From positions 80,765,072-80,829,071 of the forward strand of contig NC_052154.1 of assembly GCF_902713615.1 (NCBI RefSeq): a stretch of 64,000 nucleotides of DNA. Direction: 5' to 3'. Origin of the DNA: Scyliorhinus canicula (taxonomy: Eukaryota). A program made the translations under genes and the position numbers. Under the pieces are notes generated by a model. It was not told the origin of the DNA. It saw nothing but the letters and a program-made list of their open reading frames with translations, and did not search any database. Each line of letters begins with the position of its first letter. Positions within the stretch are counted from its first letter, which is position 1. Below, in pieces: positions 7,836 through 64,000 of this stretch.

Positions 7836-9396
7836 GATCCAAATGACCAAATTTCATGAGACAATCCCAATGCTGATCGAAGGTAGAACTGGAGACAGAA
7901 ATAATTTTTGGAGTCTTTGACATGCACTCATACATTGGAGCAGGGAGTTAGCAATTGCATAGCAATTACCCAGTTAATGGGTAATTGACATAGACTGACG
8001 GATTGCCATAAAACCCAAGTGACTAAAGTAATTGTCACAGATTTATGGTTGACATAATCATTGTCGGGATCAGTTAAGTACAGTTTTAGACATTTTGGGA
8101 AAGCTGGTTTTTGTTCGAAAGAGGGAGAGAGAGAGAGACTCAGCAGCAGGCAGCGGTTAAACGTGTCATTAGAGTGAATTAGATGATTCAGCAGTTAAGG
8201 TTGACTTGGAAACTAGGATAGGAATGTTAGAGCTGCGATTTAAAAAAAATATATGTCAAAGATAAGTCGACTAAGTTAAATATCAATGGGTGTCGTTAGT
8301 CGAGATCAGTTTCAAGGAACCAAGAAGACCCCCGCGTCCCAGGATCCACAACAGGACAGTCTGACACATGTTGAACTGATGTATCATGCCACGCCTCTGT
8401 CAATGGAATGTAAGTATCAGTATTTGTTGAATGAACCTTTTTAGTTTGCATTCTAAATCAGTGATTGCCTTTTTTAAAATAATGTTATTCCTCGACAAGA
8501 ATTTTCTTACTCTGACGTTTAGTATGGAGCCAATATCGCAACATGTGGATAATGTGTCAAACTTAGTTGATGACTATTCTCCCCAGTGCAGAGAACTTAG
8601 TTTAATTGTGCTAATAATCTCATTGCTCTCTCGAAAATCTCATTGAGTAAAATAAGCCAAGCCGATACAATACCCTAAGACCATAAGAAAAAGTAGCAGA
8701 GCAGATCATTTGGTCCATCGAGCTTTCCACCATTCAGTTGGATCAGGAGTTCTCAACCTTTTTTAACCCATGGACCCCTTTTCCTCTTAATTTTTTTTGT
8801 GGACCCCCATAGCCATTCCACAGAAAAAAAAGCTTCTTATATGCGTGGTAAACTAATCCTAAAGTCCATCTACCTTACCGTGAGGGTTGGAAACGGATTA
8901 GCGGTATTTTCGTACGTTGCCAAACTTATTCTAATATGAAAAGTAATGAAAAAAACATTTACTGACTAAATTGAATTAAATTACTCTAAAAATAACCAAT
9001 TCATATCAAATATACACAGTTGCTAGTGATTACTGTGTTAAATCATTCATTTTTTTTATATAAATGTTTTTTTATTGAGTTTTCATATTTTATATATGAC
9101 AAATTACAAGTTATTAGAGAGAGAGAAAAAAAAAAGGAAAACACAAAAATTTAACATGAATATTTACAGGTAAGCATCTTCATAACAATAATTGTGGCCG
9201 CCCCCTTTAGCCAGCATACATATTTTACATTCCCCAATATGGCCGAGGCACATGTTTATAGGCATTTATTTATAGTTTGGTTTTGGGCCTTGGCTTGCCA
9301 TCAAACCCCCATACCGAGCCCGTAGCCCCCCCCCCCCTCCCCCCGGCTACCTTCCCCCGATTCCCGCCCATTTTCCCCTGGTTCTTGGCCACCCGA

Positions 9397-40902: not shown

Positions 40903-40957
40903 ATGACAGCGAGTATGTTTTTTCTGTGTCTGATCCTCCGAGGGATTATTCACACAG
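40903..40957 (+). CDS. IgSF receptor gene 1, exon 1 (leader)
   Basis: MTASMFFLCLILRGIIHT, phase-1 donor G|gtagc. An in-frame upstream ATG lies at 40870. Similar to the leaders at 61321 and 63058. Confidence 0.8.
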
Positions 40958-41079
40958 GTAGCAGCTCGTTCATTTTCCCAATTTCATGATTTAGCAAACG
41001 TTACTTCCTCTGGATTATGTTTTAATCATCCACCTTCATGCTCATGCGATTAACCAGTATTTGTCTATATTTCTGACAG

Positions 41080-41400
41080 CTGCGGACCGCGTTTCTTTCA
41101 GTGTGTCTCAAGCACCAGAAGAAGTGACTATATCCAGAGGGGGGAACGTCACCTTCTACTGCATATTCCCCATTTTTAAAGAACAATCCTGGGTCCGGAT
41201 ATTATGGTGGAAGCATGGTGAGAATGAATACCTTCGTTCAAGCGCAGACAGGAGAAAACGGTTTGGTCAGGAAGGTAAAGTGAGCGGGTTCTTTCAGTTG
41301 CTGGGCGCGACATTGGGAGACGCTGGAATCTATCACTGCTCTGTGATCCGTCATGGACTACTTGGAAGAAATGGAACCGGATCGCATCTAATTGTGCATG
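41080..41400 (+). CDS. IgSF receptor gene 1, exon 2: germline-joined VJ-type domain (NCR3/NKp30-like)
   Basis: tttctgacag acceptor and G|gtaaat donor, 321 bp, phase 1/1. B-strand TFYC, C-strand LWW, DAGIYHC and J-like GTGSHLIV all in one exon. Confidence 0.93.
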
Positions 41401-41509
41401 GTAAATATCAAATACATTTTTCAGATGTACACGGAATCTTTTGACTGTTTTACCGTACCGATTTTGAATTGCTATTTAAACATACAATGTCAAGCGCATA
41501 GTGCTGCTG

Positions 41510-41642
41510 CCGAAGGTGGGGTTACTGGGTTACGAGGAAAGGGTGGAGCTGTGGCCTTAAATTGAGTGTTCTTTCCGAGGGCCGGTGCAGACTCGATGGG
41601 CCGAATGGCCTCCTTCTGCACTGTAAATTCTATGATTCTATG
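41510..41642 (+). mobile_element. HE1-like SINE 3' fragment in intron 2 of gene 1
   Basis: gggccggtgcagactcgatgggccgaatggcctccttctgcactgtaaattctatgattctatga tail. Confidence 0.75.
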
Positions 41643-42421
41643 AATCAATGAAGGCAATCTGTACGACAATTGAAGGATAGTGGCCACACATAATAGTTGA
41701 CAGCATGCAACTGAATAAAAATCGGTTTATGTTAATACGCATCTTTCAATAAGTACACTATTCATGCTCATTTCAAATTTATTTTCTGCCCCTATCACTG
41801 TCTTGGCGGTTCAATATTCCTGAAGTTAAATCCACACAATGATCTCCTTGCGGGTTTCAATGCCATTGTGCAGCTCAGCGCGAAGGAACGGGTACATTCA
41901 ACAAGCTAAAGTTCGAATCACCTCACTAACCTCCAATTAAAGCAGATCTGTGTTGCTGAAAGCTCCTGAAGTTCAATTGTCAGTAATTTATTTCACTTAT
42001 TTTCATGCTTCACTTGTGGGTTATTCTGGTACTGATGAAGCCCCTCATTTTATCATCAAGAGCGCGTCTATTATTCCTCACTGTCTCTGCGTATCAGGAT
42101 CCGCAAACCACCTTGCTCCCAGGGCACACTTGCTTAATTCTTTGGAGTATGAAAACTAAACACCGATTAATAAATCAGTCCGACTTGCTTGCCGAGAAAT
42201 TCAAAGTCTTGGCGTCAATAGCACAGATAGCATTGACCGCATGTCAAAGCTCATGAGAGATATGGATGAGGTGTGTATAGCATATGTGGAATATTAAAAT
42301 GACAGAAGGCTGAGCTTCTGACTGATGCTATTGTAAGAAAATGGATCGAACGTAAATCAGAATCATGTATTTTTTCCAAATCGCCCAGAATAACTCGACT
42401 TTGTCCATTTGTGTTCCGCAG

Positions 42422-42733
42422 TGGCCCCGACACCATTGAAGCTGGTCTCCAAGACATCTGAATGGGATTCATCTGTGCCTCTGATCCTAGTTTGTGAAAC
42501 AGCTGCGTTTTCCCCGGAAAATTTCACCCTCACTTGGTATAAGAATGGCGTCAAAGCAGCATCCGGAATAATCACCAGAACAGTGCAGAACAGTGAGGGA
42601 CTGTATGAAGTTTGTAGCTCTTTGTCTGAGATGCGGCCTGTCCTGAGCGACGCCAGTTATACATGTTCCGTATCTCATGTCTCCCTCAAGACCCCAGCTA
42701 TTGCCACCCTTAATACTTCTGACTCCAAGCAAG
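42422..42733 (+). CDS. IgSF receptor gene 1, exon 3: C1-set domain
   Basis: ttgtgttccgcag acceptor and G|gtacga donor, 312 bp, phase 1/1. LVCETAAFSPENFTLTWYKNG and YTCSVSHVSL are C1-set motifs (C-x4-F-x-P, W-x-K-N-G, Y-x-C-x-V-x-H). Confidence 0.92.
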
Positions 42734-43419
42734 GTACGACGACAGGAATCCAAAAAATATTGAATTCGTGGAGGGATGTAATGTACAGTTTGCACATATA
42801 AGTAATCGTGGCGCTAGTTCGTGGAAATCCAATGGGAAATATCAACGGAAACATTAGATTTAAATTAATAATATATTTCAACCTAATGTTGTGTAAAACC
42901 GGGTTATGGCAGTCGCCACACAAATATGTTCAGTTAAGCCTTGTCTATTGACAAATTCCTCTCTTACATGTATAAAATATATACAACAGGACATAGGAAA
43001 TAAATGCACGGGTTCGCCATAGGGACTGCTGAACCTGTTTGGTCATCCAGTAAGATCATTATTAACTTTCGAGATCAAATCCACTTTCCAATCCATACCA
43101 ACCGACTGCAGCCTTGAATATGCTCAGAGACTCAGCATTCATAGACCTCTGGGGTAGAGAATTCCTAAGATTCGGACCCCGTGAATGAAAAAATCCCTCC
43201 TGATCTCAGCCTTTTATTGTGACCTTTATCCGCAGTTCTTGACTTGCAGCCAGGAACATCAGTCTTGACGATCCACTTTATGCAAATAAATCCTATGTTG
43301 TCCGTTCTTTATTGTGGAGCTACTCCAAGCACTGTGAGTTTAACGAATAACCTGCCCCATTTACAAAAACAAACTGCAATTTTGCTTAACCTATATCTGT
43401 GCTCATATTAATTTTACAG

Positions 43420-43526
43420 ATTATGTGGGTATGTCCCGTTACTACTCGGGTTTCAGATACACGGTAGGCGGACTGGCGTTTCTACTGCTCCTGATTATCG
43501 CTGGGGCGCGCTACAAGAGCAGATAA
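43420..43526 (+). CDS. IgSF receptor gene 1, exon 4: stalk, transmembrane helix and short tail
   Basis: ttaattttacag acceptor, phase 1 in frame. DYVGMSRYYSGFRYTVGGLAFLLLLIIAGARYKSR*, stop at 43524-43526. Confidence 0.85.
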
Positions 43527-57189: not shown

Positions 57190-59300
57190 ACTGTTTCATC
57201 CCCGAGTCCCTTGGTGTGGGTTCCGAGGTGTACAGTCCCTGGTAAAAGGCCTCGAAGGTTTAGTTGACATTTTCTGGGTCTGTCTCCAATGTGCCTCTGT
57301 TGTCTCTAATTTGCGCGATCTCTCTAGTACCTTCCTGCTTTCTTAGCTGGTCTGCCAGCAGGCAGCTGGCTTTGTCTCCGTGTTTGTATAGGGTCCCCCG
57401 TGCCTGGTAGAGTTGGTGCATTGCTTTCCTCATGGAGAGTAGGTCAAAGTCCATTTGTAGCTTTTTCCTCTTCGGCGTGGGCTCTACGGTGAGGACCTCA
57501 GAATATTTATGATCTACCTCCAGTATGGAGTCGACCAACTGCTGCCTAGCAGCCCTTTCCTGCCTGTCTCTTTGCTCTTTGTAGGCGCTAAGTTACTCTC
57601 TAATCATGACCTTTAGTGCCTCCCAGAACAACCCCATTTACCCTCAGCTGTGGCCTGTGATACCCTCTCGCTGAAAGCCATGTCAGCTAGTGGGGCAGTG
57701 TCCAACCTTAATGTGGGGTGTTGGGCCTTGTCCGTCTCCAACCTCACATCTATATAATGTGGAGTGTGGGCAGAGATTACGATTACGGAGTATTCCGCTT
57801 CGACCAGCCCTGGAAGAACCAATTTCCCCATCACAAAGAGGTTGATCCTAGAGCATACGTAGTGCACTGGGGAGAAGAAGGAGAACTCTTTCTCCCCTGG
57901 GTGGGTGAACCTCCATGGGCCCACTGTCCCCGTCTGCTTCATAATCCGACCGAGTTTATTTGCCATATTTGAAGTCGTCCCCGTTCTGGGGTTCGATCTG
58001 TCTGCTCATGAGTCCTGTACACAGTTAAAGTCCCCCCCCCCCTCATGCACCCTCCCCACCCCCCATGATCAATCAGTGCGTGTCTCTATGTCGGGGATTT
58101 CTGCCATGATCTTTTTAATGAATTTTGCGTCGCCTCAGTTGGGAGTGTACATTTTGACGAGTCCTACCGGTGCCCCATCTATGGCCCCGCTGACAATGGC
58201 GTACTGTGCCCCTGGGTCCGTAACCATCTTTGTCGCCTGAAACATCCTCTTACTGATCAGTATTGCCACCCTCTTGGCCGTCGTCCTGTAACAGGAACGG
58301 CAGGTCTGTCTCGCCCAGCCATTCCTTACCTGCAGTCGGTCCTGCTCTCTCAGGTGTGACTCTTGAAGGAAGATTATGTCAGCTTTCATGTTTCTTAAGT
58401 GGGTGAAGACTCTGGATCTTTTCGCTGGGCCATTGAGTCCCCTGACGTTCCAGGTGACTTTCCTGGTGGACTGTTTTTGTCCCGCTGCTCCTGTGGGATT
58501 AACCATACTTTTCTCGTGAACGTGTCGCTGCACTCTGGGGTTTGCCTTTTTTAGGGGGCCATCCAAGACGGCCACAGTTACTGCTCTCCTCCATGCGGTC
58601 AGGTCCCTGTGTGCTGGGGTTTCCCTTTGTCCAGGAGGCATGCAACCTGGCCGCCAACTGTGCGTCTGCCATGTGGATCTGCCCCTGCACTCTGGGGTTT
58701 CCCTTTTTGCAGGGTGTGCCAGACATGACGGCCAACTGTGCATCCACCATGTGGGTAGGTTCTTGTACTCTGGGGTCTCCCTTCGCTCAGAGACCGTACT
58801 GGGTGGTTGCTTGCAATGCTTCCTTCCTCTGGGCCCCTGGTTGTGGCCCTTTGTAGCCATCTTGCTGAGCTCACTGTGCTCCTATTTTACCCCCTATCCT
58901 TATGCCCCCCATCTCCCCTTCCCCCCTTATCTCCCTTTTCTCTGCGTCCACCTTGGCAGGAGCTCTAAAGAAGTTCCTTGCCATCATATGTGACCCAGAG
59001 CATTGCTGGGTACAGCATACCAAAGTGTACGCCGTTCTTGTACAGAGCTGCTTTTGCCCTGTTGAATTCCACCCCTCTCCTGGGCAGGTTAGCCCCAATG
59101 TTCTGATATAGCCTTATTCTATGTCCTCACCAGCTACAGTTCTTGGACTGCCTGGCCCAGCGCAGGATTCTTTACTGGTCCTGATACCGGTGTAGTTTGC
59201 CTATTACTGCCCTTGGTTGTTCCCCAGCTTTGGGTTTTGGGCACAGCGACCAATGTTCCCTGTCTATTTCTGGTGGGTTCGGAAAAGTGTCAACTGGGCA
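57190..59300 (-). mobile_element. Degenerate L1 (ORF1 end, spacer, EN and linker), tail-to-tail with the preceding L1
   Basis: ORF 58135-58860 contains TWNVRGLNGPAKRSRVF...FLQESHL. ORFs 57613 and 57260 are EN and linker remnants. Confidence 0.85.
58535..58850. repeat. ~78-bp minisatellite, four diverged units
   Basis: ctgggg anchors at 58535, 58614, 58692 and 58770 (spacing 79, 78, 78). Confidence 0.8.
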
Positions 59301-60690
59301 GTCCAGGAAGAGCAAGCACGCTGTGCAGGAGTCCCATGGGATCCCGCTCACAAATCGTAATTCCATTTTGGAAGACGATGAGGGCACTGGTATCTCAGAG
59401 GAGTGCAGTCAGAGCCTGAGTTCTGGCACCACAAAGCGGCTTGACTGTGCAAGGGTGAGGGGGAGGGGGAGGTGGAGGAAGAGGAAAGGAAGTACAATAG
59501 TAATAGGGGATTCATTAGTCAGGGGAGTTTAACGTGCGTTTCTGTGGCCAGAAACGTGACTCCAGGATAGCGTGTTGCCTCCCTGGTGCCAGAGTTAGGG
59601 ATATCACTGAACGGTTGCAGGGCATCCTAAAGTGTGCATATGTGTGGGGTTGGGGGGGGGGGGGGGGGTTGAAAAGCCAGAGGTCGGGGTACATGTTGAT
59701 ACCAGCAATACAGGTAGAATGCAGGATGAGATTTTGCATCAAGAATTCTGGGAGGTAGAGATTAGATTAAAAAGCAGGACCTCTGAGGTTGTAATTTCTG
59801 GATTACTCCTGTTGCCAGGTGCTAGTGAGTATAGAAATTGGAAAATAGGGCAGAAGAACGCATGGCTCAAGAGTTTGTGCAGAACGAAGGGTTTGACATT
59901 ATTTGATTCCTGGGACCATTTCTCGTGAAGGAGCGACATGCACAAGAGGTACGTCTGCACCTGAACAACATTGGGACCAATATCCTTGCAGATAGGTTTG
60001 CTAGTGCTGTTGGGAAGAGTTTAGTTGGGCAGGGGGAAAGGACACAGAATATTATTAAAATAGAGACACATCATGCTATAGTAAAGGAAGCAAGTCAGAG
60101 TGCATTCAGCTATGTTGAATGTCAAGAGAGTAAATCAAGACTGGATGGTCTTTACTTTAAATCTATGAGTGCAATAGGTAAGGCAGATGAGTTAAGCATG
60201 TGGATTGACACATGGAATTGTGACAAAGTTGCCATCACAGAGACATAGTTAAGGAAAGGCCAGGACTGGCAATTTAACATTCTGTGCTTGAAGATCTTTA
60301 GGTGAGACCGAGGAGGGTGTAATTATACGAGAGGATTTCAACTTCCACAACATAACAGAATTGCTGGATCTGGTTCTGGGAACGAAGCCGTACAAGTCCA
60401 CCATGGCAGCGGGGAAGCTTTTTAGTGATAGGGTCCACAATATGGTATGGTTCAAGTTTGTTATGGATTACAAAAAAGGTGACCTTCAAAGATGCCTTTG
60501 GAGGGGCAAGGCAGATTTTACTAAAATAAGGCATTTTCTGGCCAACGTTGACTTTGAACAGCTTCTTTACGGAAAATCTACAGCGGAGCAGGGGAGGGCT
60601 TTCGAAAATGAAAGGGGGTGATTACAGTTCCAAATGTTCCCCAAAGGTGGAAAGGTAAGAGTAATACGTTCAGGGAATCGTGCGTGTCTA
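59300..60690 (+). mobile_element. Old CR1 with SGNH-esterase ORF1 and EN remnants
   Basis: VIGDSLVRG, CCLPGARVRDITERL, LHLNNIGTNILA, and EN remnant VAITET. Confidence 0.8.
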
Positions 60691-61204
60691 GAACAACCCG
60701 GAACTGATGCAGATATATGGTCAGAATGTCACCCAGCATTCAAGCATAACATCAAGTTTGCAAACAATCTGGCTCACTACAGGCAGTTGCCTAAGAGAGG
60801 CGTGGAGTATACGCTTAGGGATTAATTTTGATACAGAGACGTGTTTTCCGCTGACAGAGTGGTATGTGTGGAAAGCATTCACATAGTTAAACCCGGGCTT
60901 CATATAGAGGTGCAAGTTTTCATTGGAAGCTGTTCTCAGTTTCCAATGAAAACCGGAAAAAAATCTATTTGTATCAATCGCGATGGTTTTCAGCCCTTTA
61001 TGGGGTTTGGTGTTTCGAAAGGTTCCGTGATGCTCGCTGGAGCATTTTATTGCGTGAAAGGCACGATATAAATACTGTACAAGCTAATATTGTACAGAAA
61101 CCTTTGGAAAATATTTTTAAACCCTTGTTTTTTGTTGGCCATGCTGCAGTTGAGTTCAAAAGCTGCCGAACGTTCACAACGAAACCTATTTTGGAACAAA
61201 CGGA

Positions 61205-61225
61205 CACAGGATGTCAAACGTCATT
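61205..61225 (+). promoter_or_regulatory. Conserved promoter element with CRE half-site (cassette 1)
   Basis: cacaggatgtcaaacgtcatt, followed by RUNX-type TGCGGT (61287-61292) and E-box CAGCTG (61300-61305). Confidence 0.65.
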
Positions 61226-61320
61226 GCGCTGGTTTTCAGATTAAATATTCAGCAGACACTTAACATAGCGGCAAACTCACGGCCAGTGCGGTCAGACATC
61301 AGCTGAACCTTTATCCGGGA

Positions 61321-61381
61321 ATGATGTCGCGTGTGGCCCCTGTGTTCATATTCCTGTGTCTCCCGAGGATCATTTCAACAG
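61321..61381 (+). CDS. Cassette 1 leader exon
   Basis: MMSRVAPVFIFLCLPRIIST, phase-1 donor G|gtatct. Confidence 0.85.
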
Positions 61382-61573
61382 GTATCTGGATATTCTCTAC
61401 CCTAGATGTCTTATTAAAAAATAAATATTTCGGAGTTCTCACGGCAATTGAACCAAATATAGTTCGTCCGTCAAAATCTCTTTTGCATTTCCATGCATTA
61501 TTATGTTCTAAAGTCTCTAGTTTCGCATTGAATACAATTAATTAATAAAAACCTTAAATATATTTGATAACAG

Positions 61574-61894
61574 GCGCTCCAGCAACTTCGATCAGTGTGT
61601 CTCAAAGTCCCAAACAGGTATCTATATTAAGGGGGACAAACATCACCTTCTACTGCATAATCCCACTTTCTCATGATAATGTCGGTGTCGAAGTGCGTTG
61701 GTGGAAACAAGGTGAGAATAAATACCTCGCAAATGGAGTCGATGGAAGAAAACGATTTGATCTCAAAAGCAAAGGAGGTGGTGTATTTGAGCTGCGAAAC
61801 GCTACTCTCCAGGACTCAGGAACCTATCACTGCGGAGTGATCCGTGACGGAAAATATAGTGGAAATGGGACAGGATCCAGTTTAACTGTTTGGG
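61574..61894 (+). CDS. Cassette 1 germline-joined VJ-type Ig exon (NCR3/NKp30-like)
   Basis: ataacag acceptor and G|gtaagt donor, 321 bp. TFYC, RWW, DSGTYHC and GTGSSLTV. 55/107 identical to the gene 1 V domain without gaps (hand count). Confidence 0.93.
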
Positions 61895-62346
61895 GTAAGT
61901 GAGCGGAATGGCGGGGAACATCAGACACTCTATGGTGTCATGTTCTTTTGTACCGCATTTGATGTTATAAAACATGGTGCACAACGTCAAGTTATGCAGC
62001 AGAACGTGATATTTAATTCGCTGTGTTATTCCAAACTGCTGGAAATACTGAGCAATTCAGGGAATGTCTGTGGAGAGGGAGACAATGTTAAAGCCTCAGG
62101 CCTGTGACCTTTTCAGTGGTATATTACCGAATTCATTCAAAAGGCAATGTTTACATTAGATTTAATAGTTTGTGGGTGCTCCACCATAGATACCCCAGCC
62201 AGAGGAACCAACCTCGCCGTGTCTACCCTGGCAATCTTGTACATTCCAAAGAAATCACACCTCCGATTCTTCGAAATTCCTCACTCTCCACTTGTGGAAG
62301 CTTCCAGAAATTACTATAACTTTGCTCTTCTTATCAGTAAAAAGTC

Positions 62347-62425
62347 TTATAATACCAGGTTAAAGTCCAACAGGTCTGTTTCGAATCACTAGCTTTCGGA
62401 GCACAGCTCCTTCCTCAGATGTTGA
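62347..62425 (+). repeat. Penelope-like element tail fragment
   Basis: accaggttaaagtccaacaggtctgtttcgaatcactagctttcggagcacagctccttcctcag, a common shark PLE terminus. Confidence 0.5.
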
Positions 62426-62941
62426 AAAGGTGATCGTGGACTGATGCAGATATATGGTCAGAATGTCACCCAGCATTCAAGCATAACATCAAGTTTGCAA
62501 ACAATCTGGCTCACTACAGGCAGTTGCCTAAGAGAGGCGTGGAGTCTACGCTTAGGGATGAATTTTGATACAGAGACGTGTTTTCCGCTGACAGAGTGGT
62601 ATGTGTGGAAACCATTCACATAGTTAAACCCGGGCTTCATATAGAGGTGCAAGTTTTCATTGGAAGCTGTTCTCAGTTTCCAATGAAAACCGGAAAAAAA
62701 TCTATTTGTATCAATCGCGATGATTTTCAGCCCTTTATGGGGTTTGGTGTTTCGAAAGGTTCCGTGATGCTCGCTGGAGCATTTTATTGCGTGAAAGGCA
62801 CGATATAAATACTGTACAAGCTAATATTGTACAGAAACCTTTGGAAAATATTTTTAAACCCTTGTTTTTTGTTGGTCATGCTGCAGTTGAGTTCAAAAGC
62901 TGCCGAACGTTCACAACGAAACCTATTTTGGAACAAACGGA

Positions 62942-62962
62942 CACAGGATGTCAAACGTCATT
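62942..62962 (+). promoter_or_regulatory. Conserved promoter element (cassette 2)
   Basis: Identical to 61205-61225. Confidence 0.65.
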
Positions 62963-63057
62963 GCGCTGGTTTTCAGATTAAATATTCAGCAGACACTTAA
63001 CATAGCGGCAAACTCACGGCCAGTGCGGTCAGACATCAGCTGAACCTTTATCCGGGA

Positions 63058-63118
63058 ATGTTGTCGCGTGTGACCCCTGTGTTCATATTCCTGTTTCTCC
63101 CGAGGATCATTTCAACAG
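63058..63118 (+). CDS. Cassette 2 leader exon
   Basis: MLSRVTPVFIFLFLPRIIST, phase-1 donor intact. Confidence 0.85.
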
Positions 63119-63310
63119 GTATCTGGATATTCTCTACCCTAGATGTCTTATTAAAAAATAAATATTTCGGAGTTCTCACGGCAATTGAACCAAATATAGT
63201 TCGTCCGTCAAAATCTCTTTTGCATTTCCATGCATTATTATGTTCTAAAGTCTCTAGTTTCTCATTGAATACAATTAATTAATAAAAACCTTAAATATAT
63301 TTGATAACAG

Positions 63311-63631
63311 GCGCTCCAGCAACTTCGATCAGCGTGTCTCAAAGTCCCAAACAGGTATCTATATTAAGGGGGACAAACATCACCTTCTACTGCATAATCC
63401 CACTTTCTCATGATAATGTCGGGGTCGAAGTGCGTTGGTGGAAACAAGGTGAGAATAAATATCTCGCAAATGGAGTCGATGGAAGAAAACGATTTGATCT
63501 CAAAAGCAAAGGAGGTGGTTTATTTGAGCTGCGAAACGCTACTCTCCAGGACTCAGGAACCTATCACTGCGGAGTGATCCGTGACGGAAAATATAGTGGA
63601 AATGGGACAGGATCCAGTTTAACTGTTTGGG
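63311..63631 (+). CDS. Cassette 2 germline-joined VJ-type Ig exon
   Basis: Differs from cassette 1 by 3 synonymous changes and one V>L change. Splice sites intact. Confidence 0.93.
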
Positions 63632-64000
63632 GTAAGTGAGCGGAATGGCGGGGAACATCAGACACTCTATGGTGTCATGTTCTTTTGTACCGCATTTGAT
63701 GTTATAAAACATGGTGCACAACGTCAAGTTATGCAGCAGAACGTGATATTTAATTCGCTGTGTTATTCCAAACTGCTGGAAATACTGAGCAATTCAGGGA
63801 ATGTCTGTGGAGAGGGAGACAATGTTAAAGCCTCAGGCCTGTGACCTTTTCAGTGGTATATTACCGAATTCATTCAAAAGGCAATGTTTACATCAGATTT
63901 AATAGTTTGTGGGTGCTCCACCATAGACACCCCAGCCAGAGGAACCAACCTCGCCGTGTCTACCCTGGCAATCTTGTACATTCCAAAGAAATCACACCTC

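Follow-up and report, generated by a model that had tools for sequence, protein, structure and literature searches.

A probable young partial tandem duplication of the promoter-leader-VJ module in a catshark SIRP-like receptor gene

Does a tandem repeat of promoter, leader and VJ exon in the catshark Scyliorhinus canicula serve to diversify an immune receptor, or is it the trace of a local duplication? The repeat closes a stretch of 64,000 nt, here called the window, taken from the forward strand of contig NC_052154.1 (assembly GCF_902713615.1, positions 80,765,072-80,829,071); all coordinates below are window positions. An earlier note on this DNA described a tandem array of such cassettes and offered three readings: variable cassettes splicing to shared C1 and transmembrane (TM) exons downstream, secreted single-V decoys, or a partial duplication in which only the last cassette is used. 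We consider it probable that the locus is a young 1737-bp partial tandem duplication within the 5′ end of a catshark inhibitory SIRP-like receptor gene. There are two copies (three at most), and not a demonstrated array.

A direct-repeat search combined with a script gave a start-to-start spacing of 1737 bp over 60703-64000, where 1.9 copies are visible. The units and their parts are listed here; X1, X2, X4, X5, X12, X13, X22 and X23 are coded labels for public sequencing runs, and a SINE is a short interspersed nuclear element.

60703..62439, + strand: tandem unit 1, 1737 bp, with upstream region, leader exon, 192-nt intron, VJ exon and the first 545 nt of the V-C1 intron
61205..61225, + strand: conserved promoter-proximal element of unit 1, CACAGGATGTCAAACGTCATT, 116 nt upstream of the ATG
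61321..61381, + strand: leader exon 1 (MMSRVAPVFIFLCLPRIISTG), 61 nt, with ATG, phase 1, donor GTATCT; exact RNA contig in X1
61574..61894, + strand: VJ exon 1, 321 nt, 107 codons, acceptor ...aacag, phase 1-1, donor G/GTAAGT
62354..62421, no strand assigned: high-copy SINE-like fragment just before the unit junction 62439/62440, word depth 10^4 to 10^5 in all runs
62440..64000, + strand: tandem unit 2, 1561 of 1737 nt up to the window end; the cassette used in XP_038662970.1
62942..62962, + strand: conserved promoter-proximal element of unit 2, a sequence match to the unit 1 element
63058..63118, + strand: leader exon 2 (MLSRVTPVFIFLFLPRIISTG), 61 nt, with ATG, phase 1, donor GTATCT; spliced to V2 in RNA
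63311..63631, + strand: VJ exon 2, 321 nt, acceptor ...aacag, phase 1-1, donor G/GTAAGT; joined in RNA to C1 beyond the window

Over the 1561 bp that can be compared, the units differ by 15 substitutions and no indels (99.0% identity). The homology ends sharply left of 60703, and the assembly has no gaps in the window. The V exons differ by three synonymous changes and one replacement (GTA, Val, in unit 1 and TTA, Leu, in unit 2), leaving the mature V domains one residue apart, and the leaders differ by three replacements (M2L, A6T, C13F). At 9 of the 15 variant sites, independent runs contain both letters, which marks the differences as real sequence and not consensus noise. Three of the 15, all of them replacements, fall within the 61 nt of the leader exon, against an expectation of 0.6 (Poisson P about 0.02).

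The leader-V intron is 192 nt long in each unit. The V exon is exon 2, internal, with an AG acceptor and symmetric phases (1-1); it matches the Pfam V-set (3e-10), carries a J-like terminal strand, GNGTGSSLTV, and has as its best solved matches amphioxus IgVJ-C2, TCR V-alpha and shark NAR V domains. The 21-nt element CACAGGAYGKCAAACGTCATT has three matches in the 64 kb (0 expected), in unit 1, in unit 2 and in a paralogue at 40.9 kb, and always lies 114-116 nt upstream of a leader ATG. No heptamer or nonamer of a recombination signal sequence (RSS) was found in 60703-64000, and neither tblastn nor inspection of open reading frames (ORFs) found C1- or TM-like coding in the 545-nt spacer at 61895-62439. 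Much of the earlier note is borne out by these comparisons: the 1737-bp unit with intact leader and VJ exon, the gtaagt donor after the latter, a real promoter element, the absence of RSS, C-domain and TM exons between V1 and the next promoter, the exact substitution counts, and unit differences that are real substitutions. The repeat itself is real, but 'array' overstates 1.9 visible copies.

To which gene do these exons belong? An exhaustive protein search with the V domain returned a V-C1-TM protein family with members in chimaeras, rays and sharks, automatically named in RefSeq as 'SIRP-beta-1-like', 'tyrosine-protein phosphatase non-receptor type substrate 1-like' or 'tapasin-related-like'. 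A further search gave the S. canicula cluster, which includes XP_038662970.1 (labelled P0177), a 328-aa V-C1-TM receptor auto-named SIRP-alpha-like. Its leader (MLSRVTPVFIFLFL...) and V region (...GGGLFEL...) match 63058-63120 and 63307-63630 in unit 2 at 100%, against 85.7% and 99.1% for unit 1, and it carries all four residues that distinguish unit 2. The RefSeq gene spans 6671 nt, and because the model starts no earlier than ~62058 it begins in unit 2 and excludes the exons of unit 1. From residue 128 onward the protein consists of a C1-set domain (VAPTPLKILLK...), a TM segment and a tail that carries VTYAAV, an immunoreceptor tyrosine-based inhibitory motif (ITIM), and TAYAQI, an immunoreceptor tyrosine-based switch motif (ITSM). 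Pfam recognises a V-set and a single C1-set domain (1e-11), the latter encoded by an exon outside the window; the DNA was assessed up to position 64000, and the C1 and TM exons of the unit 2 gene are known via RNA and the RefSeq protein. Among proteins of solved structure, P0177 comes closest to human SIRP-alpha (8e-18), shark UrIg2 with its V-C1-C2-C3 chain (2e-17) and SIRP-gamma. With ITIM and ITSM recognised as motifs, the gene is predicted to encode an inhibitory SIRP-like receptor.

Transcript and DNA evidence came mostly from Logan contigs, which are built from 31-mers and drop minor variants, and whose depths are a poor gauge of expression. In X13 an 843-nt RNA contig covers 62910-63113, crosses a GT..AG joint to 63306-63631 and extends a further 313 nt into C1; the extension opens with TTGCACCAACTCCGTTAAAG... 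and reads VAPTPLKILL, the C1 exon of P0177. Contigs from X5 (1048 nt) and X12 (522 nt) contain the same leader2-V2 joint, and the C1 loose end at 63631, TTGCACCAAC(A/T)CCGTTAAAGATTCTCCTGA, with the same reading, is present in X1, X5 and X13. The V2-type exon is thus joined to a C1 exon beyond the window's end, and the C1-proximal unit 2 yields the annotated mRNA, leader2-V2-C1. The final 111 nt of V1 and V2 are identical, so that a V1-C1 joint cannot be told from V2-C1 in 31-mer contigs; of the earlier note's question, which V joins which C, the part concerning the V2-type exon is answered.

Unit 1 is not silent. In X1 we found an exact 89-nt leader-1 RNA contig (61294-61382, depth 15.3) alongside its leader-2 counterpart (63031-63119, depth 33.4), both stopping where spliced and unspliced forms diverge; from the k-mer graph structure at this contig end we infer that the leader-1 donor is used. 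Contigs of spacer RNA (61865-62371) reach a depth of 11.2 in X1 and 28.7 in X5, and others run from the SINE across 62439/62440 into unit 2 (62392-63060 in X1; 62392-63113, joined to V2, in X5). RNA thus spans both spacer and junction, which means that transcription of unit 1 carries on into unit 2. These data show, or at least strongly suggest, that unit 1 is transcribed and that its primary transcript runs via the spacer into unit 2. Other searches were negative: in the public runs no RNA contigs cover the left flank or the boundary between flank and unit 1, the raw-read RNA runs X22 and X23 have no coverage except on the SINE, and a search for short transcript-derived ORFs with leader 1 or V1 gave no candidates. 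Partial duplication, the third reading of the earlier note, thus fits best, with unit 2 matching RefSeq and RNA, but has to be modified on one point: the leader-1 contig in X1 and the RNA over spacer and junction speak for transcription of unit 1 as well. Separately, RNA contigs that start upstream of the unit 2 promoter element, in 62910-63057, place that element (62942-62962) inside transcribed sequence, at least for read-through RNA.

How could the duplication have arisen, and what would it do? One breakpoint would lie 618 bp upstream of the start codon and the other 545 bp into the V-C1 intron, just beyond the SINE fragment; because of these positions the proximal promoter, leader and VJ exon were doubled while the C1, TM and tail exons stayed single and downstream. 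The simplest history would be one non-homologous tandem duplication inside one gene, after which unit 2 would function as before. Non-allelic homologous recombination between flanking repeats was rejected as the mechanism, since the left flank has no SINE copy and the breakpoints share no common repeat. Unit 1 keeps an intact promoter element, ORF and splice sites. A transcript started in unit 1 would find no acceptor at leader 2, and the V2 acceptor would be contested by the short leader2-V2 intron. The V1 donor would thus often be left partnerless, which would account for the comparatively abundant spacer RNA.

Three fates of unit-1 transcripts can be envisaged. In the first, the spacer would be kept: reading through the V1 donor gives ...TVWGK-stop, with the ORF ending two codons past V1, and the encoded leader1-V1-Gly-Lys-stop would probably make the RNA a target of nonsense-mediated decay (NMD), as a stop codon ahead of downstream exon junctions does. 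In the second, V1-C1 splicing would yield the same receptor except for Val in place of Leu. In the third, V1-V2-C1 would be formed in frame; the leader1-V1-V2 reading frame has no stop, with the junction reading ...LTVWGAPATS.... The upstream copy is active but probably unproductive, and, judged from what it encodes, the duplication would add no meaningful receptor diversity and no repertoire.

Several observations weigh against the view that two copies are present and that the first is used. In each of the DNA runs X2 and X4 a single contig covers the unit as a mosaic of unit-1 and unit-2 letters, the two contigs being nearly exact complements, and neither run has a separate contig on the upstream region of unit 2. 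There is no clear twofold depth (unit 7.7 and flank 6.25 in X2; 4.8 and 3.1-4.6 in X4). The exact match to leader 1 is confined to a contig of one run, and a leader present in single copy could in principle have such an allele; between V2 and C1 there is room for a third unit, at most one. The missing V1-specific contigs are themselves uninformative, as Logan drops minor variants and the ends of V1 and V2 are identical. The mosaics may have arisen when a two-copy graph was collapsed and its bubbles popped, or the reference itself may be a mosaic left by polishing; gene conversion and genuine differences in copy number are further candidate causes, and copy number may possibly vary in individuals other than the reference. 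Since X2 and X4 mix the letters of both units, the 15 differences are real variants yet unreliable as unit tags across individuals. The mosaic letters lie in 60809-61525; X2 has a third leader type (T, A and G at 61324, 61336 and 61358) and a 1-nt deletion at 61114.

Could the two cassettes nonetheless be used as alternatives, in the manner of protocadherins or UGT1A, with promoters firing in different cells and each V spliced to the shared C1 and TM exons? The upstream element, ORF and splice sites are conserved in both units, both leader types occur in X1 RNA, each ending at its donor, and C1 and TM exons exist only downstream; this last part of the earlier note's first reading stands. Against it, there are two units only, their mature V domains are one conservative residue apart, and the V exon is internal with an acceptor, so that the V1 donor meets the V2 acceptor before it meets C1. 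No leader1-V1 isoform appears in RefSeq (90% cluster), and the variant sites are not tied to one unit across individuals. We regard such usage as doubtful, and the RAG-independent V-to-C diversification proposed in the earlier note as unsupported, with two units, one residue and an internal V exon. There is a slim chance of a weaker form, in which the two promoters serve different cells or states, either V exon can be joined to the shared C1 and TM exons, and unequal crossing-over makes unit number vary among catsharks. Such an incipient variable-exon cluster, if true, would show how a protocadherin-like arrangement of one constant region with several V cassettes could arise in a non-rearranging VJ-C1 receptor.

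It is also unlikely that the repeat is an artefact of two haplotypes stacked in tandem by the assembly, or a duplication carried by one haplotype only as a copy-number polymorphism. Divergence of 1% is within the allelic range at immune loci, and the transition to transversion ratio among the 15 differences, 7:8, is unusually rich in transversions. The X2 mosaic contig is continuous from the left flank (60504) past 60703 to 61605, and this, together with unit depth near flank depth in X2 and X4 and the lack of a separate upstream contig for unit 2, is what stacked haplotypes or a polymorphism would give. The novel junction, however (SINE end, 18 nt, then unit start), is present in RNA of both X1 and X5, and the window has no gaps; for these two reasons pure artefact is quite unlikely. 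Moreover, DNA in X2 shows the other context, flank to unit start, and the X4 contig has its first base at precisely 60703, which is what two different sequences preceding the unit start should produce. Long reads should also span a 1.7-kb unit easily.

The idea that V1 is spliced to V2, giving a double-V receptor of the form leader1-V1-V2-C1-TM, fares worse and we think it very unlikely. The symmetric 321-nt V exon and the stop-free leader1-V1-V2 frame would allow it, and the first acceptor downstream of the V1 donor is that of V2. Yet no V1-V2 joint is found among the listed joints and loose ends in eight runs, no S. canicula protein of this architecture is among the database matches, and the 192-nt leader2-V2 intron, if spliced fast, would compete for the acceptor. 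Among the database relatives, the longer ones (414-514 aa) proved to be N-terminal mispredictions and were rejected as V-V forms, and the multi-V proteins P0005, P0008, P0012, P0026 and P0053 were rejected as relatives because they belong to a different family. A secreted single-V decoy from unit 1, which the V1 read-through and the fairly abundant spacer RNA of X5 (where no contig lies on the leader-V intron) might suggest, is highly improbable other than as a by-product, as its mRNA would carry downstream exon junctions exposing it to NMD, its spacer lacks polyadenylation evidence, and contig depths measure expression poorly.

An Rfam scan of 58000-64000 gave no match. The SINE-like fragment, which ends 18 nt ahead of the unit junction, has many different loose ends in the runs. 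The left flank (59300-60702) resembles the endonuclease-side part of the ORF of a long interspersed nuclear element (LINE), in + orientation, and stops abruptly at the unit boundary; such 3′ truncation is unusual for LINEs, and an older rearrangement may sit at 60702/60703. A fragment (ctgctggaaatactgagcaattcaggg...), at 62033-62120 and again at 63770-63857, has two different upstream partners in RNA contigs of three runs and is probably a dispersed repeat transcribed elsewhere. The loose ends at 62033/62037 and 63770/63774 were rejected as splice joints, since they swap units between runs and fit other copies of a repeat fragment.

The rest of the gene family gives the duplication its setting. 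One paralogue lies within the window.

40903..43526, + strand: paralogue, with leader 40903-40957, V 41080-41400, C1 42422-42733, and TM and short tail 43420-43526

This gene displays the complete exon plan of the family, and its V-C1-TM part is identical to XP_038661932.1 (P0007). The first 41 residues of that protein are encoded 32 kb upstream (8286-8408) and contain no signal peptide, bypassing a good leader exon at 40903-40957 (MTASMFFLCLILRGIIHT) that the conserved promoter element precedes by 114 nt; probably this RefSeq 5′ end was mispredicted or stems from a read-through chimera.

Three sister genes, P0162, P0176 and P0178, have V domains about 99% identical to that of P0177 (1-3 residue differences) with another leader, an Arg in the TM segment (AIRCTVGG... 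in P0162 and P0178) and a short tail. An inhibitory gene with short-tailed, TM-Arg sisters has the look of a classical paired-receptor layout. Across V and C1, activating and inhibitory sisters share about 97-99% protein identity while leaders, TM segments and tails differ; this argues that ectodomain homogenisation is active in the cluster, and the pattern reads as a signature of ectodomain gene conversion in paired receptors. Rapid duplication and gene conversion characterise this cluster, and the 1737-bp duplication would be one of their products.

How does the catshark gene compare with known systems? The nearest is the SIRP family (SIRP-alpha/PTPNS1, SIRP-beta and SIRP-gamma), which shares an N-terminal VJ-type V domain (a single 321-nt exon in the catshark) followed by a C1-set domain, and, as far as motifs tell, an inhibitory member with tyrosine motifs beside short-tailed sisters that have near-identical ectodomains and a basic TM residue. 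The best solved match is human SIRP-alpha, and RefSeq naming is SIRP-alpha- or SIRP-beta-like. In contrast to mammalian SIRPs, which have two C1 domains, the catshark gene has one, and its tail carries an ITIM and an ITSM in PD-1-like order where SIRP-alpha has four tyrosines. This likeness rests on sequence, and shark UrIg2 matches the catshark protein almost as well. Our literature search found no description of this catshark SIRP-like VJ-C1 family.

Protocadherin and UGT1A loci resemble the present one in having tandem cassettes, each with its own upstream element, before a single set of constant exons to which the proximal cassette is spliced. They have many divergent units, whereas the catshark has two near-identical ones, and their variable exon is a donor-only first exon, whereas the catshark cassette comprises two exons with the variable one internal and preceded by an acceptor. 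The contig data hold no evidence of cell-by-cell promoter choice between the catshark units. The analogy fails on unit number, on unit diversity and because the V exon is not an acceptor-less first exon.

Non-rearranging VJ genes such as UrIg and UrIg2 (described in PMC12227049), NCR3/NKp30 and teleost NITR likewise have a germline-joined VJ exon without RSS. UrIg and UrIg2 form antibody-like V-C1-C2-C3 dimers and NITR genes combine V and I domains, in contrast to the catshark V-C1-TM plan with its signalling motifs. Partial duplications in the KIR, LILR and CEACAM families are alike in being young and local, with non-coding breakpoints beside a repeat, gene-converted paralogues and copy number that may vary. 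The catshark duplication differs from these in copying only the promoter-leader-V module, inside one transcription unit.

The repeat is best read as a young partial duplication of an ordinary kind, in a receptor family already known and annotated automatically, and not as a new route to receptor diversity. It is a structural variant of a RefSeq-annotated gene that brings essentially no new receptor specificity, and annotators should be warned that, through unit-1 transcripts, this gene can acquire odd isoforms or extended 5′ leaders. The duplication also illustrates how fast the catshark SIRP-like VJ-C1 paired-receptor cluster is remodelled. More interesting than the duplication is the family itself, a set of VJ-C1 receptors that do not rearrange, occur from chimaeras to sharks and have SIRP-alpha and UrIg2 as their closest relatives of solved structure.

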